A stretch of 31,941 nucleotides of DNA from Trichoplax adhaerens. Taxonomy: Eukaryota > Animalia > Placozoa. The position numbers and the translations under genes were made by a program. This document shows, piece by piece, positions 1,192 through 30,221 of this stretch. The DNA lies in the NCBI RefSeq assembly GCF_000150275.1, contig NW_002060953.1:1636864-1668804 (forward strand), in the 5' to 3' direction. Numbering within the stretch: position 1 is the first letter of the stretch; every line of letters begins with the position of its first letter. The notes under the pieces were generated by a model. The model had not been told where the DNA came from. It saw nothing but the letters and a program-made list of their open reading frames with translations, and made no database searches.

Positions 1192-3966
1192 CTACGTGTC
1201 TTTGTTGTTTGTGGATTTTCTGTCATTATTTGATTGAATTTGAGTTGGAGATGCTTTCATTCGATAGGGCTCTACTGAACTGGACAAAAGACTAGCCGTA
1301 GAATTTTCTTGATAAGAAGTTGGAGTTACAAGTCCACGGTGATTAAAGTTGTAGTTTGCCACACTTGCAGCTGCCTGTGAGGGTGTATTCATTTCAGGAT
1401 GAATGTAGATGATATACATTTTAGGTAGAAGGAAGCATAGCATTGATATTACTCCAGTTGAAAAAAGAGAAAAACTGGTTATTTTGCGATTTGTCAAACC
1501 AGTTGTTGCCAAAATAGAGGGAAGACTAGTCGAAAACACGCAAGTAAACATCATAGCTGAAAGAAGGATATAACGCGCTTCATTATAGTTGTCCGGTAAA
1601 GAACGTGTTTGAATGGCAAGAACTAATGCAATAATATTAAGTAATCCAAACAAGATACCATATACTAGTAATGCTGGATTATTGATATAACTGCACATCA
1701 TTTCTATCTTGTTATTAGCGTTGATAACCTTAGTCACTAATACAGGACGGTAGATTAATAAGGCGGCAATAGTCAACTGACTTAAAGCTGAGACAAGAAT
1801 AATGAATAGAACTTGACTTCTATTTCTTACGAATGTTGATCGCCATCTACTTCGACGTAATGATTTTTTAAATACTATAGCTATTTGATTAGCCCTACAT
1901 ATAATAGTCAGTAGCTGGCCTATTTCACTTAATGCAATAAGTATTGTCTGTGCTGCACAAATAATACTCGTAATTGGAAGGACAGAAAGCAAAGAAGCAG
2001 GAAGGCTAAGTAAATTAAAGAACTGAAATATATTTAATAGGGCAAAATTAGATGCTTTAATAATAGGTGTTTTTCGGTATATTACGATTGTCGAATAAAT
2101 AAATATCCAGCATATTAAATAGAATGCAGTAAATAAATAAAGTATTACTGCAACTGACCCTCTGGAATTGATTTCAGCTATCGGCATATCGATGCACAGG
2201 GTATGATTTTGATTTGCTTCAGTAAAATTAACGCATTTTTCACAACTACCTTGATTTATAGTATCCGATATTGTTTGATCTTTACATTTTTTACATCTCC
2301 AACAACATTGCAACAATTGAAAATTAGAATATTGACCGGATGCGACAGCATAACCAGGTCGGCAGTCATCTGAACAGCGAGATATCGGTATATTATCCCA
2401 TTTTTTACCTCCATTCCAAATGATTTCGTTATAGTTTATGGAAAGACCCATCTTCTCGTTCCAGCTTCCAATTTTAGTTTTTATTACAGTATTGACAGTA
2501 GCATTTTTAAATGGTTGAAGATTTATTACTTGATATGTTAATTGACTGCTTCCGTCACGTCGAAAACGGAATTTATTCGTGGTTACACCTTGAAATGAAA
2601 CATTGCGAAGAGCTCTTACAAACTCAGCGTGATTATTAGTAATAAAATTTGGATGAAAGGATGGGCAATAGCTGGAATTACAGCCTAAACTAGCGTGAAG
2701 AGTGTAAGCTAGCGCCAATACCGCGTCCATAACAAATTCAGCAATGTGATTCGTCTCGTAGAATTTACTAAATAATGTTACTTTTAATCGATGATTGAGA
2801 CTGCAAGAAGTTGCAGATAATTTTCCGTTTTGTTTGTATCCTGCCAAAGTTAATTTTTCATACCAAGCAGCTTTAAACCAAGGGTTGTTAGCATTATTAC
2901 ATAAATCTAGGTCATGCAAATATTTTATATAGGCTTTCAATGATCGGCCACTAATGTCAATACCTAAAGCACCCCCAAGTATGTCTCCGCTAATATTACT
3001 TAAACGCGATGATTTAAGCCAAGAGTAAGTGCCTATAAAGGTTCTACCGGTTAAATTCCGAGTTTGTGCTACTTCCAAGAAACTATGAACTACTGCTTCA
3101 TCACCAATGAGAATAATAACGTTAGATCGGTGTTGCCTTTTCAATCTTGAAACTGCCTTATGTAAGTCGAATTGAGTATGATTGGCATACAAAGTTATAG
3201 TCAAAGATATACAGATATTTCGACTTTTTATCGCTGAAGTTAGAATTTTTTCTACGTTGATGAAAGTATCCAAGCCTCCTATTACTATTGAAATCCAATT
3301 CCAATTGAAATAAGACACGATATCAGAAATTGCCTGTGCCTGAACTGCTAATGGTGACGTAGTTCTAAAAAAGTATGGAAATATATTACGATCGTTGAGT
3401 AATGTGCTAAATGAGTTATAACTTATCTGTGGGAAGTACAAACTACTTGTATACGATGCAAGTGCGATCGTAATACTTTCTATTTTTTCAGCTACTATTC
3501 CGATAGTAGGAACATGGCCAGATACCGATGTATGATCAGAAATTAGTGTACCATTATCACCAAATTGCAGAAAATTTACAGTTTCAGATTCGACGAGACT
3601 TGAAGTAAGAGATGACACAGCTAAGTGTCTTGATGAACAGGAATCAAGTATTTTATAACCAATTTCGATTCCAGGTAGTAATGTTGGATTATTATTAATG
3701 AGATAATCAATAGTATAGATCATAGCTTGGGTTAACTGTATATTTTCTGGGCTAAACCTGGAGCATCTAGAAGTTTTAGGATTGTAATGTAGACTATTGG
3801 GAAATATACCTTGTATTTGGACAGAACCATGTCTTTTAGAATAAAACTGTACACCAGAGTTGGCAGAAGATGTATAAGATGGTGTGGTGCTGTAAATGAA
3901 TAAAATAAAGACAATGTTGGGCCTAATAAAATTTGAGATTAAAATAGAAAGAAATATAAATCGCAT
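1192..3966 (-). CDS. Intronless class C GPCR (CaSR/V2R/mGluR-like), 924 aa, subfamily A
   Basis: Hydrophobic N-terminus; VFT motifs (AMIYTIDYLINNNPTLLPGIEIGYKILDSC, PQISY, FPYFFRT, FNWNWI, NPWF, MDAVLALAYTLH); 9-Cys domain (CSDDCRPG...CCWRCKKC...CEKC...C); 7TM with RKTPIIKASN, TRSLPDNYNEARYI, LLPKMYII. Confidence 0.96.
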   Translation of the reverse strand: MRFIFLSILISNFIRPNIVFILFIYSTTPSYTSSANSGVQFYSKRHGSVQIQGIFPNSLHYNPKTSRCSRFSPENIQLTQAMIYTIDYLINNNPTLLPGIEIGYKILDSCSSRHLAVSSLTSSLVESETVNFLQFGDNGTLISDHTSVSGHVPTIGIVAEKIESITIALASYTSSLYFPQISYNSFSTLLNDRNIFPYFFRTTSPLAVQAQAISDIVSYFNWNWISIVIGGLDTFINVEKILTSAIKSRNICISLTITLYANHTQFDLHKAVSRLKRQHRSNVIILIGDEAVVHSFLEVAQTRNLTGRTFIGTYSWLKSSRLSNISGDILGGALGIDISGRSLKAYIKYLHDLDLCNNANNPWFKAAWYEKLTLAGYKQNGKLSATSCSLNHRLKVTLFSKFYETNHIAEFVMDAVLALAYTLHASLGCNSSYCPSFHPNFITNNHAEFVRALRNVSFQGVTTNKFRFRRDGSSQLTYQVINLQPFKNATVNTVIKTKIGSWNEKMGLSINYNEIIWNGGKKWDNIPISRCSDDCRPGYAVASGQYSNFQLLQCCWRCKKCKDQTISDTINQGSCEKCVNFTEANQNHTLCIDMPIAEINSRGSVAVILYLFTAFYLICWIFIYSTIVIYRKTPIIKASNFALLNIFQFFNLLSLPASLLSVLPITSIICAAQTILIALSEIGQLLTIICRANQIAIVFKKSLRRSRWRSTFVRNRSQVLFIILVSALSQLTIAALLIYRPVLVTKVINANNKIEMMCSYINNPALLVYGILFGLLNIIALVLAIQTRSLPDNYNEARYILLSAMMFTCVFSTSLPSILATTGLTNRKITSFSLFSTGVISMLCFLLPKMYIIYIHPEMNTPSQAAASVANYNFNHRGLVTPTSYQENSTASLLSSSVEPYRMKASPTQIQSNNDRKSTNNKDT

Positions 3967-6449: not shown

Positions 6450-9241
6450 TTATAAATCTTCTTGGTCTGTCTCTTCTGAATAATTCTTAGGCTGAATTCG
6501 AGCTGTTAGTACTTTTCGTCCAACTGCTATTGGTGAATCAGTTAAATAGCTGTTGTTAGAATTAAGTGATATTGGTTTTGGAGATGGCCGATTATTATTA
6601 AAGGTAAAATTAGCGACACTTGCAACAGCTTGTTGACGAGTATTGTTTTCAGCTTGATAATAGATGACATAATTTTGGGTAATAGCAAACAGAAGAGAGA
6701 AATAGCCGCAAATGTAAAATTGATTATAGTTGCTACATATTGATGAGACAAACCTGTTGTAAGAAGAAGTGTTGGTACACTCGAGACAGCAACAGTAGTT
6801 ACCATTAAGGAAGCTAAAAAGATGTACCGAGCTTCACTAAAGTTATCAGGTAGCGATCGGGTTCGAAATGCCAAAGTTAACGCAGTGAAACTCAATAATA
6901 AGATTATAACTGCAAAAGCGATTATGCTCGGACTATTGGAAAATCCACACATTAATTCAATATGATTATCATCGTTGATCGTTCTTACAATACTAGCAGG
7001 ACTATAAGCAAGTAGTCCGAGGACAATAGCCTGACTAATAACTTCAGTTACAAGTATAAATAATATCTGACTACTATTGCGAATTAATTTCGATCGGATT
7101 CCACCTCCGCGTGATGTATTTTTAAAAATCATGTCAATTTGATTCGTTTTGCTAATAATGGTAACTAAAATGCCAATCTCGCTTGCACTAATCATAACCA
7201 TTTGAACAGTGCACGCCATTTTCGTCACTGGGATTAAGTAAAGAAAAGCTGATACTAGGATTAATAAATTGAAACAGAGATAGATATTTAATAGTAAATA
7301 ATTAGAACCTTTCACGACTGGAGTTTTGCGATATAAAATAATTGTGACCCATATGAAGATTAGAGCTACGAGGTAAAATGATGTCAGGATATACATTGCT
7401 ATTGCAAATGCTCCATCCCATTTAATTCTCGCTATTTGCATATCTACGCATTCAGTGTGATTATCGTTCGGTTGAGTGTAATTAACGCATTTTATACATC
7501 GTATTTGATTGATCGCATCTGAGATTGCCTGAGGTTTACATTTTCTGCATTTCCAACAGCAAGGATACCTTGATGATGCCATATCTCTCGGCAACTCAAG
7601 GTAATGACCCGGCTGGCAGTCTTCTGAACAACGTGCTGAAGGTATTTCAGACCAATTATTTCCTCCATTCCATCTAATTTTTTTCGAATCAATAATAAGA
7701 TCATTTTTCAGACTCCAAGAACCAATTTTAATCTTACGGACTGTATTTGTAGTAGCATTTTTAAATGGATGAAGAGTTACAATATCATAAGGTAATTGAC
7801 TGCTTCCATCTGGTCGAAAAACAAATCGTCGGCTGGTTATACCAGGAAAGGAAACTTTATGTAAATAATTTTTAAATTGCCCATGATCCTTTGCTATCAT
7901 ATCTGGATCAAATGGCGGGCAAGAATGAGAATTACAGCCTAGTCTATCATGCAAAGCATAAGCTAGTGCTAGTACTGCATCCATAGTAAATTCAGAGATA
8001 TAATTAGCGTCGTAAAATTTATCAAATAAGGATAATTGTAATCTACGATTGATCTTACAATTTTTTATAACTTGTTCAGCATTATAACCCGCTAATGTTA
8101 ATTTTTCAAACCATGCTTGTATAAACCAAGGATTATCAACGTTATTACATAAATCAAGATTTTGTAAATAGTTAAGAAACTTTTTGTATGTTTCTCCAGG
8201 AATGTCTAGACCTAATGCACCCCCTAGTATATCTCCACTTATATTGCTTAAACGCAACGATTTCAACCAAGTATAACTTCCAATGAATGTTTTACCGGAT
8301 AGCTTTTGAGCTTCCGCTACTTTTAAGAAGTCAAAAACTATATTTTCATCTCCAATAAGAATAATGACATTAGATTGATGCCGTTGCTTTAAATTCCTAA
8401 CTGCTCTATATAAAGCTGATTGAGTATAGTTTTCATTTAATGTTATGATTGTGGATATGCAGATGTCTCGATTCCGAGCATTCGTTGTTAATATTTGCTT
8501 GATATTAGTGACTGCTTCATTACCAGCGATTATGACTGTAATCCAGTTCCAATGGAAATAAGATATAAGATCAAAAATAGCTTTTGTTTGTAGTTGTACA
8601 GTTGACGTTGTTCTAAAAAAGTACGGATATAAGTTACGATTTTGCAGCGAATTGGTGAAAGAGTTATAACTTATTTGTGGTAAATTTAAACTGCTTGTAT
8701 ACGATGCTAGTGCTAGAGTAAGAGATTCCGATTTCTCAGCTACTATTCCGATGGTTGGATTGCGAATATTCGTATTATTCTCTAATGATGTTACAAAATT
8801 TGTAAGAATATGATTTGAATTCGGGATTTGACATGTTGCATAAGAAAAAATTTCTTTGTCAGAAGTAACGAGACTTGATGTAAGGGAAACTGAGGCTGCA
8901 AATCTTGATGAGCACGAATCCATTATCGTATAACCAAGTTCAATTCCAGGCAATAAATTTGGATTACCATTAATAAGTTGATTCATAGTGTAAATCATAG
9001 CTTGTGTTAACTGCAAGTTTTCCAGACTAAAGGCAGAACAAAGGTTAGTGTTTAGATCGTATTGCAAGGTATTGGGGAAAACTCCTTGGATTTGCATTAT
9101 ACCAGCTTTTCTAGCAAATTGTGGATTTTTTCTGTATTGATAGGCATTGCAGACAGGCGTAATAGCGCTAGTCAATAAAAAAAATATTGAACTATACAAA
9201 AATTGAGATTTTAAGATTGTAATTTGATTTCTATGAGACAT
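6450..9241 (-). CDS. Intronless class C GPCR, subfamily A, with a 1-bp frameshift just after TM7 (as assembled 899 aa ending 6542; corrected 930 aa ending 6450)
   Basis: Same domain motifs as 1192-3966. At ~6670-6672 the coding strand reads CCC AAA ATT -AT GTC ATC TAT. Restoring one T gives PKIYVIYYQAENNTRQQAVASVANFTFNN...EETDQEDL*, matching the paralog tail PKMYIIYIHPEMNTPSQAAASVANYNFN. Confidence 0.9.
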
Positions 9242-12200: not shown

Positions 12201-14303
12201 TTGCTTATATTTCATCACTGTTCTACCAAAGTTACGTCAATAAAATCGAAGGGTAGAATCTAATTTTGTTTTCGATTCATTTTTAGTTATGACAGCCCAG
12301 AACAAATCCTGTTTTCGTTTAGCAGTAGTAATCAATAATAAGATAACTACTGCTCTAATTTCCATGTTAGTGCTCTCTTTAATTCTCTCAAACGATGCTA
12401 CAGAAATCGGCGTTTCAGCAGATGGCCAAATAGTGCTTGGCGGAGTGTTTCCAATTCACAAACAGTACGATGCCAAAAAGCAGCTATGTAGCAATATAGA
12501 CTGGCAACAAATTATTAACGCTTATGCGATGATATTTGCTATTGAAACAATTAATGAAGATCCTTATTTGCTACCTAATATCACATTGGGCTATGATATA
12601 CATGATGGATGCGGTGACGAACAAGTCAGCGTCAGAGAAACGTTAGACATACTGTTCCAATTCACAAAACGTAAATCTGTGAAAAGAATGGTCATCGTCA
12701 ATGTTCTTTCTCATCTTGCTCAGCCCCTAATGAGTTCTCTACTACTACTTCTGCTATAATACAAGCCGTAAGTAATAAATTGGCAGGTATTATAGGAACT
12801 CAGACTGCACGTGGAAGTATCGATATGCAAGGAATTTGCAAAGTTTTCAACTTAGTCCAAATTACATATGGTGCCAAAGAAGGTCTATTAGGTGATAAAA
12901 CAAGATTTCCAACCATTTTACGAACTATTCCTCCGGAAGATCATTATCCGGCAATTTTAGAATCTATTCTATCCTACTTTAATTGGAAATTTATCGCCAT
13001 GTTGTCATACGTTGGTGATCTAGGTAGTCGTGCCTATGAACAAGCCCGAAAATATTTTCAAAGGAAGAAAATATGCGTCCTTTTAGCAGAAAAAGTTTCA
13101 AGACTGCAGAATAGTATCGCTGCAGCAGTATCGAAAATTAAAACAAGTCCTGCTAAAGTTGTTATTGTTATGGTTACGAATCAGTATCTAACGAGTATTA
13201 TTCAAGAATTTGAAAAACAAAATGTGACCGGTAAGATAATTATTACGACTGGTACTTTGGAAAGCCAGTTTTTTAAGACTAGTCGAGATATAATTGGAGG
13301 AATGATTAGTATATCCCTTAAGCATCGCCCGAGTTCAAAATTTGTAGAATATCTTCGAAAGTTTACGCTTTGTCTCAGTTTGCGACCATTTTTAAGCCAG
13401 GAACTCGAAAATCGCGGATTCACTAATTTTACAGAACAAGATCTTGAAGAATCTTGTGGCCAGTTACTCAATAAAATTGGTGAAACAAAGAAAGATATCT
13501 ATCGAAATTCTTTCAGTATATCTTATGTCGTAGACGCTGTCAATGCTTTAGCTCATTCAATCCATAAAACCTTAAATTGTAGTAACAGTTCTTGTCAATA
13601 TGAAATAGTCAATCATCCATCCTTTAAAAATCAAGTTAAAAAAAACTTATATGAAATATCTTTTGAAGGCGCATCAGCTCCGATATTTAAGTTTGATGCA
13701 AATGGAAATCCTTCCCATATCATCTATTATATCCATAACATAAAATCTACACTACAGAATACATATGACGTCGTCTTGGTCGGTACCTGGAGAAATAATC
13801 ATTTTCCTCCTTTGCACATTAACGATACGCTAGTTAGTTTCGGGCCGTATTCTAACTTAAGTCAGATTTCTAATCCATGCTCATCTACTTGTCAACCTGG
13901 TAGCTATTATCAATACCTAACGAATCTTACATGCTGTTGGAAGTGCATTTCTTGTCCGCTCGGAACAGTCAATAATCAATCACAGTCGTCAAGTTGTTTT
14001 TCTTGTCCTTTAGGAAGCTTAGCGAATCGACAACGAACGCAATGTCATCTGATCGAGCCCTACGAATTGACATTTTATAGTATATGTAGTGTTTACTTCT
14101 AAATACGGTATAGTCTATTTTTAGTAAAAGTCAATTTCCACTAGATTGTAGCATAACTCTAAATATGTATAATTTATATTTAACAAAATACTCTGTGGAA
14201 ATCGCTTTGAATCTAGCTGAATTATATCGTAGCCCTGTCTTAACATAGAAGTAACATATTCTTATTAGTCATTTATGATTTCCTCCTGCTGTGCTTCATA
14301 CAT

Positions 14304-14310
14304 TATAAAA
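14304..14310 (+). promoter_or_regulatory. Candidate LTR TATA box
   Basis: TATAAAA located ~155 bp upstream of the AATAAA, the usual U3-R order in an LTR. AT-rich background lowers specificity. Confidence 0.55.
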
Positions 14311-14461
14311 GCTATCTTCTTTCACCTATCTCGTTAGTTAGTTCTGCTAGTTACACGGTAAGCTTGCACGCTTTACCTATGCTACATTACTATAGCTATT
14401 CGACTAGTCACGTCGTTATACACGTTGTAATCTCATACGGTTTTTCCTTTGCACTAATTCC

Positions 14462-14467
14462 AATAAA
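14462..14467 (+). terminator. Candidate LTR polyadenylation signal
   Basis: AATAAA 75 bp before the LTR end. Confidence 0.55.
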
Positions 14468-14544
14468 CTCTATTCCTCTACTAAATTAACTCTGGTAATT
14501 TACTGTGATCATGACGAATCCACAATCTTCCGAAACATCACAAT

Positions 14545-14562
14545 TGGCGACGAGGATGGGAT
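14545..14562 (+). promoter_or_regulatory. Primer-binding site complementary to the 3' end of tRNA-Ser(GCU)
   Basis: TGGCGACGAGGATGGGAT is the reverse complement of ATCCCATCCTCGTCG-CCA, the 3' end of metazoan tRNA-Ser(GCU) as I recall it. It overlaps the gag ATG at 14556. Confidence 0.88.
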
Positions 14563-16358
14563 ACTCGTTGGTCGCTACGCCTGGTCAATACGATATCCAT
14601 TCAAATCAGTGGCCTACCTACGAAAACCACTTTCGCAATTTCCTCAAGGCCAACAATATGGGAATGGAACATTCCTTACATTTATTTTTGGCGTTGGTTG
14701 GACCTGATGCATACAACATTCTTACAAGTTGTGCATATCCGAAAGCACCCGAGGATCATACCTTGAAAGAACTTTTGGAAATGCTTGCCAATCACTTTGT
14801 GCCGAGCCGACTGAAGCATGCCGAACGTCACAGAGTTTGGAAGAACATGCAACTCGAAGGAGAGTCTATCACTGCTTACGTCTCAAGAATCCGGAAGTTA
14901 GCTACAACATGTGAATTTGCAGGCGACTCACTCGAAGCAAATTTATTGGATGCTTTTATTTTGGGCCTTCGTGACACAGGAACAGTCCGAAAATTTTTAT
15001 TGGAAGAAAATTTAACTTTGGATCGAGCCGTTAAAATTGCACGGGAAACCGATATGGCCTCCGCAGAAGCTCAAACAATCACCTCAGCTAGGACAGAATT
15101 TCTCACACCGATCAATTTCAAACAGCGATTGTCCGGAGCTCCACCAGCAAGGGTTGTACACACAGGGGAATCGCGTATAGCTTCAGATGTTCCACACACG
15201 CCTTGCCCCTCGTGTGGCGCTACTCATTGGCGTATAGACTGTCCTCATCGACAGGCGGTCTGCAACCATTGCCAGAAAACAGGCCACATAGCTAAAGTTT
15301 GTAAACAAAAACACAGTGGTCAGTCAAAGAAACGCAAACGAAGTCACAATAATCAAAAGAGGAAGAAGACCCAAGCTAATGTAATCTTCGAGAAAAATCC
15401 GAAACATCACAGTATACAGAATGTAATCATGTTAATTTATCTTAGTCTAGGCGCTGTTTGTACAGTATTTACTTGGATTGTAATTATTCTATATCGTCAT
15501 ACAGCAGTAGTTAAAGCTTCTGATTTTATGTTGTCACAAATGTTTCTGCTTGGTATTCTGATGTGTATGTCTACTGCAGTTTCTTTTGCTGCTCCAGTTT
15601 CAATGCTTAATTGCTCCGTCGGTTTTATCTGGTTTTGTACATCCGTCGTATTTATTGTGTCCATCATTTTTGTTAAAACTAATCGAGTTTCTAGAGTATT
15701 CGAGTCAGGTTTTGTGAAGTCCTTTAAGACAAGAGTATATCTTAGCTATCAAGGACCCGCTATATTAGTCGTCTTTCTGACCGTAATACAAATAGCAATC
15801 TGTTTTATCGCCAATTATTTCGATCCTATTCAAGTTAATCGACTTGTAATATCTGAAGATATAGTTTATTTGCAATGTCGATCTAATACTCGCATTGGAT
15901 ATGCAATCGCGGTTGGCTATTTTTCTGTTCTTTGTATTTGCTGTGTTTATTGGGCATTTAAAACACGTAAATTACCAGAAAATTTTTGTGAAGCAAAATA
16001 TATTAATTTTACTTCTTTAATCATACTTATGTCTTTGCTAACTATGGTTCCGTCTTATTTCGGAACAGCGGGGCCTATTCAGGCAGCAATATCATCATTT
16101 GGTATAATCACGTTAGCCTTAGCTATTTTGCTTTGTATGTTTAGTCCAAAGTTGTATATAATTTTACTCCATCCAGAACAGAATACTCGTGAAAATGCTA
16201 TAGCGGATATAGCAAATTATTCCTTTAATCAAGTTGGAACCCCAATTACGAGTAGACAAAAATTGGTACATGTAGGACGTACAACGCCTGCTATTTCCCC
16301 AAATCCATCCGAAGTTTTGGAAATGACTCCGGAAATAAGCAAAGAAAGAATAAACTAA
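14556..16358 (+). CDS. Chimeric ORF: retrotransposon Gag (capsid + 2 CCHC zinc knuckles, ~281 aa) fused in frame to the class C GPCR 7TM domain and C-tail (~315 aa); 600 aa from ATG 14556 (in-frame upstream ATG at 14511)
   Basis: Gag motifs WPTYENHFRNFLKAN, LFLALVGPDAYNIL, QLEGESITAYVSRIRKLATTCEF, LTLDRAVKIA; knuckles CPSCGATHWRIDC and CNHCQKTGHIAKVC; junction ...QANVIFEKN-PKHH-SIQNVIMLIY...; no stop until 16356-16358. The ORF is certain; expression is unknown. Confidence 0.75.
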   Translation: MGYSLVATPGQYDIHSNQWPTYENHFRNFLKANNMGMEHSLHLFLALVGPDAYNILTSCAYPKAPEDHTLKELLEMLANHFVPSRLKHAERHRVWKNMQLEGESITAYVSRIRKLATTCEFAGDSLEANLLDAFILGLRDTGTVRKFLLEENLTLDRAVKIARETDMASAEAQTITSARTEFLTPINFKQRLSGAPPARVVHTGESRIASDVPHTPCPSCGATHWRIDCPHRQAVCNHCQKTGHIAKVCKQKHSGQSKKRKRSHNNQKRKKTQANVIFEKNPKHHSIQNVIMLIYLSLGAVCTVFTWIVIILYRHTAVVKASDFMLSQMFLLGILMCMSTAVSFAAPVSMLNCSVGFIWFCTSVVFIVSIIFVKTNRVSRVFESGFVKSFKTRVYLSYQGPAILVVFLTVIQIAICFIANYFDPIQVNRLVISEDIVYLQCRSNTRIGYAIAVGYFSVLCICCVYWAFKTRKLPENFCEAKYINFTSLIILMSLLTMVPSYFGTAGPIQAAISSFGIITLALAILLCMFSPKLYIILLHPEQNTRENAIADIANYSFNQVGTPITSRQKLVHVGRTTPAISPNPSEVLEMTPEISKERIN

Positions 16359-18639: not shown

Positions 18640-21600
18640 AAGCATACGGTAATTATTAGAATTGTATCTGGATTATTCATTTGTTAAGTTTAGAGCAAAA
18701 TGAGATTTCAAATTAAGGATCGAAACCAAATGTAACCAAGTAATCATTCTATTTTAATTCCATTTCATAGAAAATGGACCATCATCTGCTAATCATTGAA
18801 CTTAATGGATTGGTAACAGGATTTTACCTGGATTAATTCAGTAGCTGCTAGAAACTGAGCTAAAGCTGCGTTGTATTGGATAGTCATTACATTGCAAATT
18901 TACATTGCTTTTGGTGCTTATAAAATATTGCCGTCTTTTATATATTTTTTTGATGTATTCCTCATCATTTTAACATCTGTGACCATACAAGCTAGTTCAA
19001 AATTGACTTAAGTGTTTAGGATTATGCACCTGACATTTCCATTATTGCTGATTGAAGAAAGGAGAAATTTGATTTCTGTTTAAAAATGGATAATTAAACC
19101 ATTTTGCTTATTATGCTCCATTACTATTTTAATATAATAAATATATTAGGAGGAATAAATCATCCTAACATATGTTTAGTGAATTCGACAAGATGAATAG
19201 AAAAATAACATTTTCTTAGATTGAATGCAGGGCAATTGAATTTTATTGATCTGTTTTATAATGCCTTCAAAATTGAATTGATTAGCTATACGTTCCGAGT
19301 TAATCCAATCAATATTTCTTCTTGGGAGAATTGCTATACGTCATCATTATCTTTTATTACTTTATAAAACTCTATGTCATACTAATCAACATACATGAAC
19401 TTGAAATAACCATCCTTAATTATATCAACGATAACGTCTAAACTTGTCATTATGTCCTAAAAATAATCTTAACGCTGTATTTCATATCAGAAAGTAACGT
19501 CCGTGCATTTGCATCTTAAACTTAGCGTAAAGGCCTTAAAACATTAATGCTATGAAATTAGAAATTAGCTGATCGATAAACATTGATGTGCGGTAAATTC
19601 TATCTGCATTGGTAGGGGCTATCGTAATCATTCGTTTAATGATAATAATCTAGATCTAGAAAACTGAACGAATTAACTGAACGCCTTTTTATTATCGATT
19701 TATATGTTTAATTTATTGACATTACTAGCTTATACTACAACATTTTAGCATAAGTGTATTGTTTGGGTAGAATAAACTTTAAATAGCTACGAAATCAAAT
19801 AAATGTTAATATGTAAAGTATTTGAAAATTAGCTATTTCGTCTTCTAGAAAATTAAATTATTTGTTCGCGTATTAACGTAGAATTCATTTCTTATCGATT
19901 ACATTTTCAATTTTTACGATTTTGTAATTGTAATAAATGCTTATATTTTATCTCTATTCTACCAGCGTTGTATCAATAAGATCGAAGAGTAGATTATAAT
20001 TTTGCTTTCAATTCTTATTAGCAATGACAGAACGTACTACATCCTGTTTTCGTTTAGCAGTAGCAATCAATAATAATATAGCTACTGGCCTAGCTTCTAT
20101 GTTAGTACTTTCTTTAATACTCTTAACCGATTCTACAGAAATCGGCGTTTCAGCAGATGGCCAAATAGTGCTTGGCGCAGTGTTTCCAATTCACAAACAG
20201 TATGATGCCAAAAAGCAGCTATGTAGCAACATAAACTGGCAACAAATTATCAACGCTCAGGCGATGATATTTGCTATTGAAACAATTAATGAAGATTCTT
20301 ATTTGCTACCTAATATCACATTGGGCTATGATATACGTGATGGATGCGATAATGATCATGTCATCGTTAGAGAAACGTTAGACATACTGTTCCAGTTCTC
20401 AAAATATAAATCCTGTGAAGAAAATGGTCGTAGTCAATACTCTTTCTCATCTTGTTCCTTTCCACATGAGTTTTCTACTGCTACTACTACTTCAGCCTTA
20501 GGACAAGCCGTAAGTAATAAATTAGCCGGCATTATTGGAGATCAGAATGCTCGTGGATGTCTTGATATTCAAGGAGTTTCCAAAGTTTTCAACTTAGCCC
20601 AAATTACATATGGTGCCAAAGAAAGCCTTTTTAGCAACAAGAAAAGATTTCCAATGATTTTACGGACTATTCCTCCGGAAGATCATTATCCGACAATTTT
20701 AGAATCTATTTTATCCTACTTTAATTGGAAATTTATCGATTTACTGTCGTACGTTACTGACCTAAGTAGTCGTGTCCATGAAGAAATCCAGAAATATTTA
20801 CAACAAAAAAATATATGCATACATTTGTCACAGAAAGTTAAAAATCAGCAGAACAGTATCTCTGAAGCAGTATCGAAAATTAAAACAAGTCCTGCTAAAG
20901 TCGTTATTATTACGGCCACGAATCAGTATCTAACGAGTATTATTCAAGAATTTGAAAAACAAAATGTGACCGGTAAGACAATTATTACGACTGGTACTTT
21001 GGAAAGCCAGTTTTTTAAGACTAGTCGAGATATAATTGGAGGAATGATTAGTATATCCCTTAAGCATCGCCCGAGTTCAAAATTTGTAGAATATCTTCGA
21101 AAGTTTCCGCTTTGTCTCAGTTTGCGACCATTTTTAAGCCAGGAACTCGAAAATCGCGGATTCACTAATTTTACAGAACAAGATCTTGAAGAATCTTGTG
21201 GCCAGTTACTCAATAAAATTGGTGAAACAAAGAAAGATATCTATCGAAATTCTTTCAGTATATCTTATGTCGTAGACGCTGTCAATGCTTTAGCTCATTC
21301 AATCCATAAAACCTTAAATTGTAGTAACAGTTCTTGTCAATATGAAATAGTCAATCATCCATCCTTTAAAAATCAAGTTAAAAAAAACTTATATGAAATA
21401 TCTTTTGAAGGCGCATCAGCTCCGATATTTAAGTTTGATGCAAATGGAAATCCTTCCCATATCATCTATTATATCCATAACATAAAATCTACACTACAGA
21501 ATACATACGACGTCGTCTTGGTCGGTACCTGGAGAAATAATCATTTTCCTCCTTTGCACATTAACGATACGCTAGTTAGTTTCGGGCCGTATTCTAACTT

Positions 21601-24600
21601 AAGTCAGATTTCTAATCCATGCTCATCTACTTGTCAACCTGGTAGCTATTATCAATACCTAACGAATCTTACATGCTGTTGGAAGTGCATTTCTTGTCCG
21701 CTCGGAACAGTCAATAATCAATCACAGTCGTCAAGTTGTTTTTCTTGTCCTTTAGGAAGCTTAGCGAATCGACAACGAACGCAATGTCATCTGATCGAGC
21801 CCTACGAATTGACATTTTATAGTATACAGAATGTAATCATGTTAATTTATCTTAGTCTAGGCGCTGTTTGTACAGTATTTACTTGGATTGTAATTATTCT
21901 ATATCGTCATACAGCAGTAGTTAAAGCTTCTGATTTTATGTTGTCACAAATGTTTCTGCTTGGTATTCTGATGTGTATGTCTACTGCAGTTTCTTTTGCT
22001 GCTCCAGTTTCAATGCTTAATTGCTCCGTCGGTTTTATCTGGTTTTGTACATCCGTCGTATTTATTGTGTCCATCATTTTTGTTAAAACTAATCGAGTTT
22101 CTAGAGTATTCGAGTCAGGTTTTGTGAAGTCCTTTAAGACAAGAGTATATCTTAGCTATCAAGGACCCGCTATATTAGTCGTCTTTCTGACCGTAATACA
22201 AATAGCAATCTGTTTTATCGCCAATTATTTCGATCCTATTCAAGTTAATCGACTTGTAATATCTGAAGATATAGTTTATTTGCAATGTCGATCTAATACT
22301 CGTATTGGATATGCAATCGCGATTGGCTATTTTTCTGTTCTTTGTATTTGCTGTGTTTATTGGGCATTTAAAACACGTAAATTACCAGAAAATTTTTGTG
22401 AAGCAAAATATATTAATTTTACTTCTTTAATCATACTTATGTCTTTGCTAACTATGGTTCCGTCTTATTTCGGAACAGCGGGGCCTATTCAGGCAGCAAT
22501 ATCATCATTTGGTATAATCACGTTAGCCTTAGCTATTTTGCTTTGTATGTTTAGTCCAAAGTTGTATATAATTTTACTCCATCCAGAACAGAATACTCGT
22601 GAAAATATTATAGTGGATATAGCAAATTATTCCTTTAATCAAGCTGGAACCCTTACCAAGAGTAGACAAAAATTGGTACATGTAGGACGTACAACGTCTG
22701 GAATTTCCCCACATCAGTCGGAAGTTTTGGAAATGACATCGGGAATAAGTAAAGAAAGAATAAACCAAATCTATTCATCTTGATTACAAAATTTACAACT
22801 GCAAGAGTTATAAACGAACGCCGCTTATATATAATGAGTAATTGCAACCATAAACTTGAGTAAGAACTATTGCATCTATTGCACATTGGTTGCCATACTG
22901 CATCTCTTTCATGAATTGTCTAATAAATGGCTGTAACATCATTACATGTGGCAATAGCTACATTTCTGACCCAAATAGCTACATTAATTCTGAAGCATAT
23001 TATGTAATTAATTATTGTTAATTAGCTTAAGAGTGCTAAATTTATATATTTTAAGATCCAAGAATAATTTTCTGGTTGTACTAATCGTCGAATAACTATT
23101 TTGGTCCTTTACTTTCCATGATACAAATTATTGTAGTTATTCAAATGTAATTTTAAATCGATTCGATTATGAGTTTTTTTGGATTATGTTAGGCATCTAA
23201 GAATCAGAATATTTAAATGGAAACTTAACTAGGATGGATGAAAGGCCACTTTAGTTCAACTTGTGTCAATGTTTGTAATTAGCTCTTTCTACGGTAGTGA
23301 GTATTTCAGTGCAAGTCAAAGTTAAAGCGGTTAATAAGCTAATAGGCTAAGTCATTTTTGAAATCTTTTTCTGATATGTTTTGTCGCAATTCTATCCAGA
23401 TATTGAATAACTCATTTACTCACGGTTTAAATTTTGAGCATTTGATTTTATTTCTTCTCCCATAAAATTAGCTAATTGTTTCTGGTTGATTGAATCAAAC
23501 CAGCAATTTCAGTGTTACATCGTGTTTAGAAATGTATCACATCGTAATATCTTGATTATAATTGTCATAAACCGACTAATGTAAACGTAATAAGTCAATT
23601 TTATAATTATATCACTTAAGAAATCAGCTGAATAAAAGCTCGAGTGATTCAAAAATCTAGCGATCTAGTAGCTTATTAGCGTAAAGTTTTATCATTTTAC
23701 AGTTTACACCGTATACGAGAATTGGAGTGGAGCTCTATCTTGTAGAAAGTAGGAATTGCATTATAGACTAGAAAAGTAAAGAACTATAAAGACTGCGTAC
23801 ATGAAATCTAATTTCTATACTTAATCTGTAATAGTAATAGGCAACGAATACTTGTAGTATGAAAACAAAATATGAGGGATCGAGTGATTAAGAGTTATTG
23901 ATAATGTCTTTACAAATACATTCCGTGATGACGAAAGGTGTACAAGGAAAATGATTGTCATCTTAACATTTAGAAAAATGTAGAAATAGTTTAATTGAAT
24001 CTTTGTTGTTATTAATAATACATAACAATTTGTGCTTGAATAGTTTAAAACTAATTAATAATCACATTTTAAGTTTATTTTAATGTATACTACAGAGAGT
24101 GGCGTTATGACTAATTATCGTTATGTTAATAATAGAAATTTTCCATTATTAATATTAGTTAGTTAGCTAGCGCGGTAAATAGACCGATGTGACTTAATGT
24201 ACTGTAATTGGGAAGAGGCCAACTACTTTACAGGCGTTAGACATTGTATTAAGCAGATTGATTCGTACTGTAAAATAAAGTGATAACCTATGTAAGAAAA
24301 TATCTTCTGTAAATCTTCTGTTAATATGTCGAAAATAGATTAAAGGAAACTTTCAAGCTTAAGGTTCTCTAAATTCGATTTGTGCTTTAATAATCTATGC
24401 GTACTATTCTTACAACAAGGACTGCGCTCTACAATAAGCCTAATTTTTAATTTCTACTTGCCAAAGAAAATTTTTGAGAGAATTAATTTAGACTAAAAAG
24501 AATCTTACGAGATATTATCACAAAGCAATACATTGTGTTAAGTATAAAGTAACTAATCAAGATAGGAATTTAATCGACTTTAACAACGAACCAGTATATG

Positions 24601-26477: not shown

Positions 26478-27191
26478 CGGCGTTTAAAAGATAGTCAAAT
26501 AGTTCTTAGTGGAATATTTCCAATCCATAGAAGTTGTGATCAGAAAATACAGCGATACAATATCATTGACTAGCAACATTTCATTAACGTGCATGGAATG
26601 ATATTTGCCATTAAAGAAATTAATAATAATCCAAATTTACTGCTTAATATTACGCTAGGTTATAGCATACGTAATGGATATAATGATAGCCATATCGCTA
26701 TTAGCGAAGCGTTGGATTTATTGTTTCAGTTTACAAAGATAAGTCCTATCTAGAAAATGCTAGTAATCGATGCTCTTTCTTAGCTTGCTCAGACTATATG
26801 ATATCCTCTACTACTGCTGCAGTTACAGAACTTGACATTAGTAACCAATTAGCAGGTATTATTGGGACTCAAAATTCCCGTAGAAACTTTGATATTCAAG
26901 AAACTTCGAAAGTTGCCGATACAGCGCAAATTAGTTACAGTGCCAAGGGTGATAATTACTTGAGAAAGCAAATATTTTCAACAATTTTTCGAATTATTAC
27001 CTTTGTATTTCATTACCCCAAATGATAGCGTCAATTTTAGTCAATATAAATTGGAATTTACTTAACCTACTGTCACATATTACTGATAGCGATGATATTC
27101 ATCAGCAAATTGTCAATCATTTTAAAGCAAGGAATACAGGCTCACTTTTCAGAAAGTATTTCACGAGTAAAGGAGAAAATAAGTAATGCCA

Positions 27192-27724
27192 TGTCACAAC
27201 GTCGTTTGTAGTAAAAGTAACTAATTTTATTCCTAGCGTAACCGCTCTACCGTAATATACCGTTGCTAATAAGCTTCACTAACTCGACCAGCTCAGTATA
27301 CGACCTTATTCAGCAATGAGTATATCCAGATAACTTCATAAATCCTCTTTATTCGAACGATAGAATATACTACTAGGCAATGTAATATCAGAACTGCTTC
27401 TATGATTAAAGGTACGCTCTTATATACCTGTGCCAGTTTCCATCGGCATAATTCTATTTACAATATACTTGATTTTGTATAACATATATTTATGATAGTC
27501 AGTATAGAATAAATATATGTAATTTAATATTGAGTGTTTACTACTCTTACTCCAATTAACAAATCAACTAGACTTGTTACTAAACAACTCACTAATCAAG
27601 TGTGACAATCTTTATCACACATTCATTAATGGAAATCCATTAACGACTTAACTTATCACAACTCTACTTTAGGAAAAATATGAATAAATATCTTTTTTAT
27701 TTACGGTAATGATGAACAGTAACA
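27192..27724 (-). mobile_element. Solo-LTR-like insert (533 bp), family shared with 30222-30842
   Basis: Removing it restores AGT AAT GCC TTG TCT AAA ATT AAA (SNALSKIK; paralog SEAVSKIK). Ends TGTCAC...GTAACA; TSD TGCCA/TGCCT; minus-strand TATA (~27420) then AATAAA (27348-27353). Confidence 0.8.
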
Positions 27725-27813
27725 TGCCTTGTCTAAAATTAAAAAATGTCAAGCCAAAGTCGTTAACATTTCAGCTTCTGATCATACCCTAACGGAAATA
27801 ATTAACTGGTAAC

Positions 27814-28338
27814 TGTAATATCGTTTCCACAGTAATTTTAGTCCACAGAGGAATCCAGTACTATAAAAGCTTTTTATTACAAGGTTCTAAAGAATAGTAC
27901 AGCAATAATTAATTACTCACAAGAATCTAGTCTAAAGTAATCTGAGCTCAATTAGATATCAAATCTTTTCTCCTCCTTTACGCTCAGATTTGTACACCTT
28001 ATATACTTTTCTCTGAATCTATTTAAGGCAATAACATCGTCTACAATCAGACATGAATCATCACTACATTTTACAGTATTAATCAAACTGCTACAATATT
28101 ATTACTTTACCATTAATGTCCAACACCGTAAGGTATTGGGCATCTTTACAATCTTAGTATTTCAAGTCGTATAACGTCCTGTACCATAATTAGTTAACAG
28201 CTATATTAGTGAATAACACTTTCTAATATAGTAGTTACCAGTCACCTAAATCTAGCAGCACAAGAATATCTATTTTTAGAAACTTAACTATTCTAAATAT
28301 AGTACGCAACACAAGCAAATCTAGGGTGCATCACTACA
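27814..28338 (-). mobile_element. Solo LTR (525 bp), related to the 14085 LTR
   Basis: TGTAATA...CACTACA with perfect TSD GTAAC (27809-27813, 28339-28343); removal restores ACTGGTAACACAATAATT (paralog ACCGGTAAGACAATTATT); the minus strand begins TGTAGTG like the 14085 LTR and has TATA then AATAAA. Confidence 0.88.
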
Positions 28339-30221
28339 GTAACACAATAATTAAAATAGGCAACTTATGAAACCAGTTATTTTTTACCAATAGAGATCTA
28401 CTAGCAGGGTTAATCTGTATATCATAAAACAATACCTATCAACATTCTCTTGGCGTATCTCACGTTCAGAATAAGGTAAAAGTACTAATACATACAATCC
28501 ATAAGATATTAAAATGCAATAACAGTCCTTGTCAACGTTAAATAATCAATAATCCATCGTTTAGAAAACAAGTCAAAGAAAATTTGTATCGGATATCCTT
28601 TGAAGGCAAATCAACACCTTTATTTCCATTTAATAAGAAAGGAAATCCTCGTTATATTACTTACATCCTCGTTACCTTAAAATCTCAGAGTGGGCAGGCC
28701 AATATATATTATATTGTCTTTGTTGGTACATGGAAGAGTCAAAATTTTCCCTTATTACAGGTTAACGATGATACTGACATTGAATTGGGATCCTATTCTA
28801 ATTTAAGTCAGATTTCTGGTCCACATTCATCAACTTGCCAACCTGGTAGCTATTATCAATTCATTGCAATTCGGACATGTTGTTGGAAATATATTGCTTG
28901 TCCTCTTGGAGCTGCCAACAATCAATCAGTCACCAACTTGTCATGCTTGTCCATTAGTAAGTTTGCCAACGCAGTACAAAAATAATGGTATAATCTTGTT
29001 CACGTATCTTATCCTAACTATTATCATACCGTCTTGACTTGGATCGTGATTATTCATTATTATCATACAGCAATTGTCAAAACTTCCAATTTTATATTGT
29101 CGCAAATGTTTCTACTAGGCATTCTCATGTGTATATTGGTGGCAGTTCCATTTGCTGCACCAGTTACAATTATTAAATTGCTCGATAGGTTATATCTGAT
29201 TTTGTACATCAATTACTTATGTTATGTCGATCATCTTTGTTTAAACCAATAGGTTTTCTAGTGTTTTTGAGGCAGATTTCGTAAAATCTTTCGAAGCGAG
29301 AGCGTATCTTGGCCATCGTGGGTTCATTCTCGTGGCAATATTTTTAACTTTGATACAAATAGCGATATGTTTTATCGCTAATTATTACGATTCTATTAAA
29401 GTTCATCGCTATTTTATACCAAAAAACATAGTTTATCAACGATATCGGTCGAATACTCTCGTTGAATCTGCAATTACAATTGATTATTTCTCTATACTTT
29501 GTATTTCTAACGCTTATTGAGCATTTAAGGCAAGAAAGTTGCTAGATAACTATTGTGAAGCGGAAAACATAAACTTTACTTCTTTCATGATTCTCATGAC
29601 TTTATTAACCATGGTTCCGTGGTATCTTGGCACGGTGCGGCCCATTCAAGTGCCGATATTACTATTTAGTATTGTCATCTTTGCCTTGACTATTTTGCTT
29701 TGCTTGTTTACTCAAAAGCTATACATTTTTTATTCCACCCAGAACTCAATACTCGTGAACATGTTATGACCAATATAGCTAATTTATACTTCAGCTGGAA
29801 GCTGTGGAATCAATGAGGGGAACAATATTCACGTAGGCCTCAAGATCGGCGTAAATTCATTCAGTTCCACCAAAGTTTCGAATGTAATGCAAGATATAAC
29901 GAATGATAAAGTAGAGTAAGATTAATTTACAAGCTATACGAAATTAAGTAGGCATAGAATTTAGAGTTAACAGGTAGGTTAGGTTATAAATATATCAAGA
30001 ATAATCGTAACTGCCTCTATTGTAGTGTTTCACGGATTGATCTAGAGTAGATTCAAATGCCTTAGTTATTAAATTATGCCACGTTGGTTTTGGTCGATTA
30101 TCTTCGTATAGAAAACCAAATATCCTGGCTTTAAGTTTATTTCTTTATATAATACTTTAATTAGATAAAAAAATCGAAACTTATACATTTGAAGAACAAG
30201 CTATTGATAATGATAATGTCT

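Follow-up and report, generated by a model that had tools for sequence, protein, structure and literature searches.

The window analysed here is a stretch of DNA of 31,941 nucleotides that matches the Trichoplax adhaerens H1 reference at 100%, and within it lies a cluster of class C GPCR genes, intronless and arranged in tandem. Receptor gene A (paralogue A, 12289–16358; the features of genes A and B and of the insertion described below are all on the + strand) is a single coding exon that holds a 1327 bp insertion, and paralogue B (20024–22783) encodes an intact class C receptor of 919 amino acids and has the empty target site at 21822–21826. The cluster paralogues have the complete VFT–NCD3G–7TM layout by Pfam. 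An additional, degenerate receptor copy is found at 26490–29913, so gene death is ordinary within this cluster. Scanned against Rfam and for tandem repeats, the window gave no matches, and six of its ORFs had no exact counterpart in a protein collection.

The N-terminal coding part of gene A (12289–12676, frame 1) comprises a signal-peptide-like start and the beginning of the Venus-flytrap domain; residues 1–133 of paralogue B match 12289–12687 in this frame by tblastn, and Pfam ANF_receptor matches there too. Gene A, in which an earlier note on this DNA had described the insertion, is not otherwise intact: a 1 bp deletion relative to paralogue B, common to H1 and H2, shifts the frame at about 12676/12677, near codon 130, as seen from the alignment with paralogue B (column 412) and from a change of tblastn frame at the same point. 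The remaining Venus-flytrap domain and the cysteine-rich domain (NCD3G) occupy 12678–14084, up to the insertion site (Pfam ANF_receptor E=8e-36, NCD3G E=4e-10), and residues 131–623 of paralogue B match gene A from 12678 to beyond that site (tblastn). The insertion separates the cysteine-rich domain from TM1, and the upstream receptor ORF ends at an in-frame TAA (14100–14102), 16 nt inside the LTR. Beyond the insertion, 15417–16358 encodes the 7TM domain, the C-terminal tail and the stop: the Pfam 7tm_3 match (15417–16151, E=3e-49) spans profile positions 7–251 of 251, giving a complete class C domain, and hydropathy reveals seven hydrophobic segments, with a PKLY motif within TM7. All of the domains are therefore present at the locus, but the signal peptide, Venus-flytrap domain and cysteine-rich domain are not in frame with the 7TM domain, the class C layout being broken by the stop in the insertion and by the frameshift. 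Judged from these two independent lesions in its sequence, the receptor encoded by gene A is dead; in the H2 copy of gene A the ATG and 38 bp have also been lost.

The element inserted in gene A

The insertion consists of a 5′ LTR, a primer binding site (PBS), gag and the last 14 bp of the 3′ LTR, and is flanked by a 5 bp target-site duplication (TSD), GTATA, at 14080–14084 and 15412–15416, of which the 3′ copy supplies in-frame codons as part of Ser-Ile. Empty sites with a single GTATA are present in paralogue B and in the H2 contig L002. The 5′ LTR (458 bp, 14085–14542) has TG...CA ends, a TATAAAA motif at 14304–14310 and an AATAAA motif at 14462–14467; its end, previously placed at 14544, is corrected here to 14542. 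The 3′ LTR tail, TCCGAAACATCACA (15398–15411), is an exact repeat of 14529–14542 and stands immediately 5′ of the second GTATA; such 14-mers would be expected by chance about 0.01 times in 2.6 kb, an estimate in which the position is not yet counted. The 18 nt PBS (14545–14562) adjoins the 5′ LTR and is complementary to the tRNA 3′ end ...ATCCCATCCTCGTCGCCA, its plus strand ending in TGG as the complement of ...CCTCGTCGCCA. The primer is presumably tRNA-Ser(GCU); neither the window nor the H2 contigs gave, in a tRNA scan, a tRNA gene bearing on this identity. A small RNA with a matching 3′ end has been reported from ticks (PMC4592253).

Between the two copies of the TSD there is thus one LTR and 14 bp of a second. 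What an intact element would carry between gag and this tail, namely protease, RT, RNase H, integrase and a polypurine tract, is missing, as is the bulk of the 3′ LTR. Searches by tblastn with three gag-pol relatives found no pol remnants in the window or the H2 contig, gag alone being matched. The earlier note was right that pol and almost the whole 3′ LTR have gone. The locus resembles other insertions of LTR retrotransposons into coding exons in its TSD, TG...CA LTR, PBS and gag, in a host ORF that ends within the LTR and in a downstream host exon in frame with the coding sequence of the transposable element (TE). It differs from them in consisting of one LTR, gag and a 14 bp tail only, and the host genome is among the most TE-poor in animals, its TEs making up 0.13% of the genome and being fragmented, judged inactive and, in most other copies, degenerate (PMC2871265).

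The gag sequence (14556–15397) stops where protease would start, with the LTR tail directly after it, and contains capsid helices (about 14610–15101), zinc knuckles of the forms CX2CX3HX4C (15204–15242) and CX2CX4HX4C (15261–15302) and a basic tail (15327–15368). The structural elements already recognized in the earlier note (LTR, PBS, gag capsid and knuckles, and a complete in-frame 7TM domain) are all present, with small corrections of coordinates. In the HMMER searches that it had proposed, the receptor half gave the strong 7tm_3 match described above, whereas the Retrotrans_gag match was weak (E=0.0015) and fell below the cut-off. A phmmer search, in a set clustered at 50% so that longer gag-pol copies more than 50% identical would be hidden in one cluster, returned 12,744 gag relatives; the long ones that were checked are gag-pol proteins with RT, RNase H or integrase domains, and one of them (P0044) has the full order gag-PR-RT-RH-IN. 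The AF2 model of gag has nine helices and a mean pLDDT of 86, and nearly all of the Foldseek matches listed are retroviral, retrotransposon or gag-derived capsids. With a capsid-fold ORF retained and a CCHC nucleocapsid present, gag is, on its sequence and predicted structure, of the Ty3/gypsy type; like members of the Metaviridae it has a two-lobed helical capsid, two CCHC knuckles and a PBS adjoining the LTR, and it differs from them in the absence of pol.

Clades of Ty3/gypsy such as Mag and Tag are delimited by RT. The element is accordingly assigned to Ty3/gypsy by its gag, and the earlier placement near Mag would require an RT, which this copy does not have. Outside Trichoplax, identity to the nearest gag does not exceed 39%, searches of 5.8 billion and 1.84 billion sequences gave no close relative of this gag, and a gag-only query for other placozoan gag copies of 157–499 amino acids recovered only the H2 fusion. 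The gag piece was catalogued in 2010 as the Gypsy fragment ABGP01000706.1, with Gypsy-6-I_NV from Nematostella as its best Repbase match and its class given only as ‘Gypsy’ (PMC2871265).

We propose that a Ty3/gypsy-type LTR retrotransposon entered the single exon of gene A, making the 5 bp duplication, and that pol and most of the 3′ LTR were lost either after integration, by deletion, or beforehand, if the cDNA that integrated was already deleted internally. Two separate events had been thought necessary, but integration in a single step of a cDNA in which gag was joined to the U5 end, with both integrase-recognized termini, would suffice. The TG and CA termini with their clean TSD, the disappearance of pol and the polypurine tract without trace and the identity of the junction in both genomes are consistent with such an origin; nothing specific counts against it, although post-integration deletions are common too and no full-length parent was recovered in which to look for microhomology at the break. 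We regard the single step as a possibility to be taken seriously, if only tentatively.

The Gag–7TM reading frame

A stop-free frame runs from 14505 to 16358, giving 617 codons when counted from a mechanical GTG. Its in-frame ATGs lie at 14511, within the LTR, and at 14556, within the PBS, the latter opening a protein of 600 amino acids. The insertion plus one TSD measures 1332 bp (3×444), and gag is in frame with the complete 7tm_3 domain. The insertion does lie at the boundary of the cysteine-rich domain and TM1, as had been claimed, and the join falls four residues (SIQN) ahead of the hydrophobic TM1. The caveats attached to that claim, that the frame had a 1-in-3 chance of being kept and that the topology may be abnormal, both hold: in our proposal, the 3′ junction would have put gag in frame with the 7TM exon by chance, and the 40 residues before TM1 contain 11 Lys/Arg against 1 Asp/Glu in the fusion, where the native receptor has 2 of each. 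No signal peptide was found on the Gag–7TM ORF. Given this charge and the missing signal peptide, the native N-out topology of TM1 is unlikely in the fusion. The predicted protein is like class C GPCRs of the calcium-sensing and metabotropic glutamate type, and like engineered ‘headless’ 7TM forms of these, in its complete 7tm_3 domain and PKxY-type motif in TM7, but differs in that a cytosolic-type, highly basic Gag replaces the ectodomain and signal peptide.

The LTR keeps its TATA and poly(A) motifs. With the terminator copy of the 3′ LTR lost, any LTR-driven transcript would continue into the 7TM domain. Such a transcript, or read-through, might instead yield a 7TM-only protein from the internal ATG at 15429. 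Even when the ectodomain is absent, 7TM domains of class C receptors are able to fold and to respond to allosteric ligands. The 7TM domain is intact, and the H1 annotation contains a model of just this kind (309 amino acids, 15429–16358); however, this model appears to be ab initio, many AUGs and the whole gag ORF would lie upstream of 15429 on an LTR transcript, and 7TM-only homologues were not seen as a conserved class. A look-up of the model returned the H1 reference alone and no transcript-derived contigs. A headless receptor made from this locus is accordingly very unlikely.

Gene conversion and the comparison of H1 with H2

Excluding the insertion, gene A from 13150 to 16196 is at least 99.7% identical with paralogue B (about 20892–22606). 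Site by site, over 13385–14084 and 15412–16196, the two genes have three differences, and 100 bp windows from about 13237 to 16168 all show 98–100% identity, whereas most of those outside show 74–87%. Read from this pattern, a gene-conversion tract between A and B spans the insertion site. The sharp edges of a near-identical tract within otherwise divergent genes are those of interlocus conversion between tandem paralogues; the Trichoplax tract differs in crossing a 1.3 kb heterology present in one copy only. Because the partner is a functional paralogue, the intact 7TM domain needs no selection on the chimera, and conversion, on our reading, has held this part nearly identical to paralogue B.

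Near-identity of A and B around the site would also invite mis-threading of reads, and the H2 contigs end at the repeat edge, so an assembly artefact, in which the Gag/7TM junction would be absent from the animal, had to be considered. In the independent Trichoplax sp. H2 assembly the 3′ junctions, LTR tail and TSD are identical to those of H1. Two assemblies that were made independently, by different technologies, and that show allelic differences elsewhere in gag thus agree on the junction, tail and TSD, and we reject an artefact as scarcely credible. The H2 assembly places the insertion on paralogue B, its reads (2×150 bp, inserts of 500 bp) being too short to phase the 935 bp identical flank; a real transfer to paralogue B was considered.

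Between H1 and H2 the insertion alleles differ at 7 of 1253 bp, and the H2 fusion protein (P0001) is identical to that of H1 at 478 of 481 residues. An insertion described as very young is therefore young in a relative sense only, being common to the H1 and H2 alleles. The PBS carries a single C>T at 14551 in H2. The LTR is identical in H2 from 14163 to 14542, but 14085–14162 is unrelated to the H2 sequence; with its first 80 bp or so wholly different between the two genomes, and no second LTR for comparison, the 5′ LTR is at best putatively intact. Neither the H2-specific 86 bp LTR start nor the H1-specific 78 bp had a match elsewhere in the sequences compared, and the two starts are not reverse complements of each other. 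Within gag there are three synonymous and three nonsynonymous changes, giving an omega of 0.28 (P=0.12). Only 5% of substitutions in gag would yield a stop, so an open gag frame is expected under neutrality, and we suggest that the frame is still open because the insertion is young, with only these six coding differences between H1 and H2, and because conversion with paralogue B has preserved the 7TM part.

What the locus encodes

We therefore favour, with a probability of about 85%, a reading of the sequence in which the locus is a transposon-disrupted receptor pseudogene and the open Gag–7TM frame is most likely a by-product, and we infer that no functional protein is made from it. Weighing against a by-product are the 285 gag codons without a stop in both genomes, when most other Trichoplax TE copies are reported to be degenerate, an omega below 1, albeit not significantly so, the LTR motifs together with the loss of the 3′ terminator, and a model predicted across the H2 junction by MAKER, an evidence-guided annotator.

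The same features might be read as exaptation, with the LTR driving a Gag–7TM protein that the animal produces and puts to use; this might be a self-assembling capsid that binds RNA and is tethered to the membrane, or might serve to load a receptor module on to particles. Neither genome has a stop in the ORF, the predicted capsid fold is of good quality and the 7tm_3 domain complete, the LTR promoter motifs are kept while the 3′ terminator is gone, and omega is low. However, that omega is not significant, conversion from paralogue B accounts for the intact 7TM domain, the basic segment before TM1 and lack of a signal peptide predict an inverted or frustrated topology, H1 and H2 do not share the first 80 bp of the LTR and the rest of the locus is decaying. 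In addition, this architecture was seen nowhere else, with no other Gag–7TM protein among 5.8 billion proteins and the fusion found in T. adhaerens H1 and Trichoplax sp. H2 alone; of 14,572 Trichoplax ESTs, from H1, none matches a TE (PMC2871265). Arc/dArc1, PEG10, PNMA2 and MOAP1 share the capsid fold and are among the best structural matches of the Trichoplax gag, but these domesticated genes no longer have LTRs, and they are expressed and kept across species by purifying selection, whereas the Trichoplax copy keeps its LTR and was found in H1 and H2 only, with an omega drawn from six differences. Exaptation is in our judgement very improbable, and the functional proposal of the earlier note, a membrane-anchored capsid or particle-loaded GPCR, gained no evidence in its favour and some against it. 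The specific form in which the LTR promoter is active and Gag–7TM is inserted in the membrane with Gag in the cytosol, as a capsid and RNA-binding module on a class C core, seems to us slightly more improbable still; if it were true, the open frame kept in H1 and H2 would reflect use and not youth.

The fusion had been thought undescribed. Its gag does appear in the published TE table (PMC2871265) and the fusion ORF is in GenBank, although we found no paper that discusses the Trichoplax fusion, and a search for literature on Gag–GPCR or Gag–transmembrane fusions found no relevant paper. A pseudogene here has direct consequences for annotation: retrotransposon Gag makes up half of the H2 protein that GenBank lists as “Extracellular calcium-sensing receptor, partial”, and the 7TM-only model of H1 is a piece of a broken gene. 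Should the chimera prove to be expressed and stable, it would be the first natural fusion of Gag with a GPCR core known to us, and only then would it carry biological weight. As we read it, three ordinary processes have met at this locus, in an animal genome with very few TEs: the insertion of a retrotransposon, the decay of a pseudogene and conversion between tandem paralogues.

Anatomy of the interrupted receptor gene

The AT-rich window matched the T. adhaerens H1 reference assembly (GCA_000150275.1, scaffold DS985251.1) at 100% across 19.4 kb, with its first base at scaffold position ~1,636,864; a 50-base N run at 376–425 is a gap in that assembly. Class C GPCR genes that lack introns form a tandem cluster in the window, and every one combines ANF_receptor (Venus flytrap), NCD3G and 7tm_3 domains. 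By domain search we located receptors of 924 aa (1192–3966) and 899 aa (6542–9241) on the reverse strand and, on the forward strand, the interrupted gene A (12289–16358) and its intact relative, paralogue B (919 aa, 20024–22783). The fifth copy, also on the forward strand (~26490–29913), is degenerate, with several frameshifts, ~48% protein identity to B and ~1.4 kb separating its well-matching blocks, and is another pseudogene of the cluster.

The insertion in gene A is flanked by the TSD GTATA (14080–14084 and 15412–15416), which is present as a single copy at the uninterrupted site in paralogue B and in one contig of Trichoplax sp. H2. A 458 bp 5′ LTR (14085–14542, TG...CA), with TATAAAA at 14304–14310 and AATAAA at 14462–14467, precedes an 18 nt primer binding site (PBS; 14545–14562) that is overlapped by the gag start ATG at 14556. 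The gag region (14556–15397) contains the knuckles CX2CX3HX4C (15204–15242) and CX2CX4HX4C (15261–15302) and a basic tail (15327–15368). After it come 14 bp (15398–15411) that repeat the 3′ end of the LTR exactly, and the receptor sequence restarts 4 residues upstream of TM1. The insertion plus one TSD measures 1332 bp, a multiple of three. As the earlier note had claimed, Gag is in frame with a complete 7TM domain: the frame 14505–16358 runs for 617 codons without a stop, and its gag-like region precedes a complete 7tm_3 match (E=3e-49, profile 7–251 of 251). The upstream receptor frame of gene A still stops, at a TAA (14100–14102) 16 nt into the LTR. We also noted, 3′ of the TATA box in the LTR, a 36-codon upstream ORF (14379–14489) and an in-frame ATG (14511), both before the gag ATG, and a C>T change at 14551 in H2 that gives one more in-frame ATG within the PBS.

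Identity of the gag region and its H2 counterpart

Scanned in full with HMMER, a set of 1.84 billion representatives returned 12,744 gag relatives, the best non-self identity being 39%. RT, RNase H or integrase domains were present in the long relatives checked, and in one of these (P0044) an N-terminal gag is followed by protease, RT, RNase H and integrase, which is the Ty3/gypsy order. No pol remnant was found within the window, and placement in the Mag clade needs RT, which this gag copy lacks. The AlphaFold model of gag, with 48 sequences as input, had a mean pLDDT of 86 and displayed nine helices, two lobes and two knuckles. Its listed PDB neighbours were nearly all retroviral, retrotransposon or gag-derived capsids (MLV CA, dArc1 with a target TM-score of 0.73, dArc2, PNMA2, Arc, HIV-1 CA, Copia and PEG10), a coherent set with modest E-values of at least 2.6e-3. 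The PBS is complementary to the 3′ end of an animal tRNA, which we take to be tRNA-Ser(GCU).

A small RNA matching the PBS complement has been printed (PMC4592253). The 2010 Trichoplax repeat survey, which put TE content at 0.13% and reported neither active elements nor ESTs derived from TEs, had already catalogued the gag fragment as Gypsy (ABGP01000706.1, best hit Gypsy-6-I_NV), and its repeat table also lists related degenerate gag copies elsewhere in Trichoplax (PMC2871265). One of these has a similar PBS and an ATG at the same place (PMC2871265), in support of a gag start at 14556.

A search of 5.8 billion proteins with the fusion as query identified a 481 aa H2 GenBank protein (P0001) that is the same Gag–7TM fusion (478/481 identity) under the name ‘Extracellular calcium-sensing receptor, partial’; a second H2 protein (P0002), whose gene model begins in a shifted frame, represents the empty site. 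At this locus the H1 annotation holds only a 309-aa 7TM-only model (15429–16358) and a 186-aa flytrap fragment (12526–13121), and both these split models of the broken gene and the H2 name for the Gag–7TM ORF are misleading labels. Our literature search found no paper discussing a Gag–GPCR fusion, and to that extent the fusion is undescribed, but the ORF was in GenBank and the gag fragment in the 2010 survey.

The deletion junction, LTR tail and TSD proposed for H1 are real, as they recur identically in the insertion-bearing H2 contig (L001, NOWV01000346.1). The two insertions differ at seven positions in 1253 bp, one in the PBS and six in gag (three synonymous and three nonsynonymous), with none in 382 bp of LTR or in 709 bp of 7TM. 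Nei–Gojobori counts for gag gave pN=0.0046, pS=0.016 and an omega of 0.28, which with six differences is indistinguishable from neutrality (binomial P=0.12). As only 5% of possible gag substitutions create stops, neutral evolution to this degree of divergence is expected to leave the gag frame open. At the 5′ end, the initial 78 bp of the LTR in H1 (14085–14162), with the canonical TG start, are unrelated to the initial 86 bp of the insertion in H2 (L001 9420–9505). Beyond these differing ~80 bp, however, the LTR shows no difference, and both junction contexts represent the same event.

In H1 the insertion lies in A and B is intact, whereas the H2 assembly joins the insertion to B-like upstream sequence and has an empty A-like contig (L002). 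This H1-guided assembly used 2×150-bp reads with 500-bp inserts (PMC6057997), which cannot phase ~935 bp of identical flank, so that its placement of the insertion is not reliable. The two H2 contigs terminate at the A/B repeat edge (the equivalent of 16120), and at an internal breakpoint of L001 (3718/3719) a tRNA-synthetase region absent from the window is joined to the equivalent of 16122. These features likely reflect an assembly break or mis-join at the A/B repeat, and the apparent insertion in B of H2 is therefore not reliable; the simplest reading is that H2 has the same arrangement as H1.

Gene conversion and decay of the host gene

In H1, identity between A and B is 74–87% through the bulk of the upstream coding sequence and ~87–91% in the C-terminal tail, but at least 99.7% over ~13150–14084 and 15412–16196 (against 20892–21826 and 21822–22606). 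This sharp-edged tract spans the site of the 1.3-kb insertion, which is in one copy only. Such a tract is the hallmark of interlocus gene conversion, by which the chimera's 7TM was recently copied from a functional gene. A Gag–7TM product that is in use would also account for an intact 7TM; since that domain is a recent conversion copy, its integrity is uninformative on selection on the chimera, and we regard such use as very improbable.

Relative to B, gene A has a 1-bp deletion at ~12676/12677 that shifts the frame after ~130 codons and is common to H1 and to the H2 contig whose flanks are A-like. The H2 A-like copy (L002 9700–10200) has in addition a start ATG changed to ACG and a loss of 38 bp, and the insertion-bearing H2 contig has an extra 1-bp deletion at the equivalent of 13638. 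From these lesions, the ectodomain part of the gene A locus is decaying.

Origin and expected fate of the fusion

In the account that the evidence favours most, a Ty3/gypsy element, or an internally deleted cDNA keeping both ends, integrated within the coding exon of one receptor paralogue, now a pseudogene, and loss of pol happened to put gag and the 7TM in one frame. The chance needed would be one in three for the frame, a caveat of the earlier note that we retain, together with a stop-free 14-bp tail. The two-event origin suggested in that note fits the loss of pol with the frame kept, but the internally deleted cDNA fits as well. That the frame is still open is explained by an event that is recent on the scale of the mutation rate and by conversion, which refreshes the 7TM. 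We estimate the probability that the open Gag–7TM frame is a by-product at roughly 85%.

The fusion has no signal peptide, and its 40 residues before TM1 contain 11 Lys/Arg against 1 Asp/Glu, compared with 2 and 2 in the native receptor, bearing out an earlier suspicion of abnormal topology. By the positive-inside rule, this basic flank and the ~280-residue folded Gag should remain cytosolic, which would reverse the native N-out orientation of TM1. As the other helices retain a native bias of their own, misinsertion and degradation would be the likelier fate of the fusion. At the RNA level, since the 3′ LTR terminator is gone, a chimeric transcript would be expected if the LTR promoter fires.
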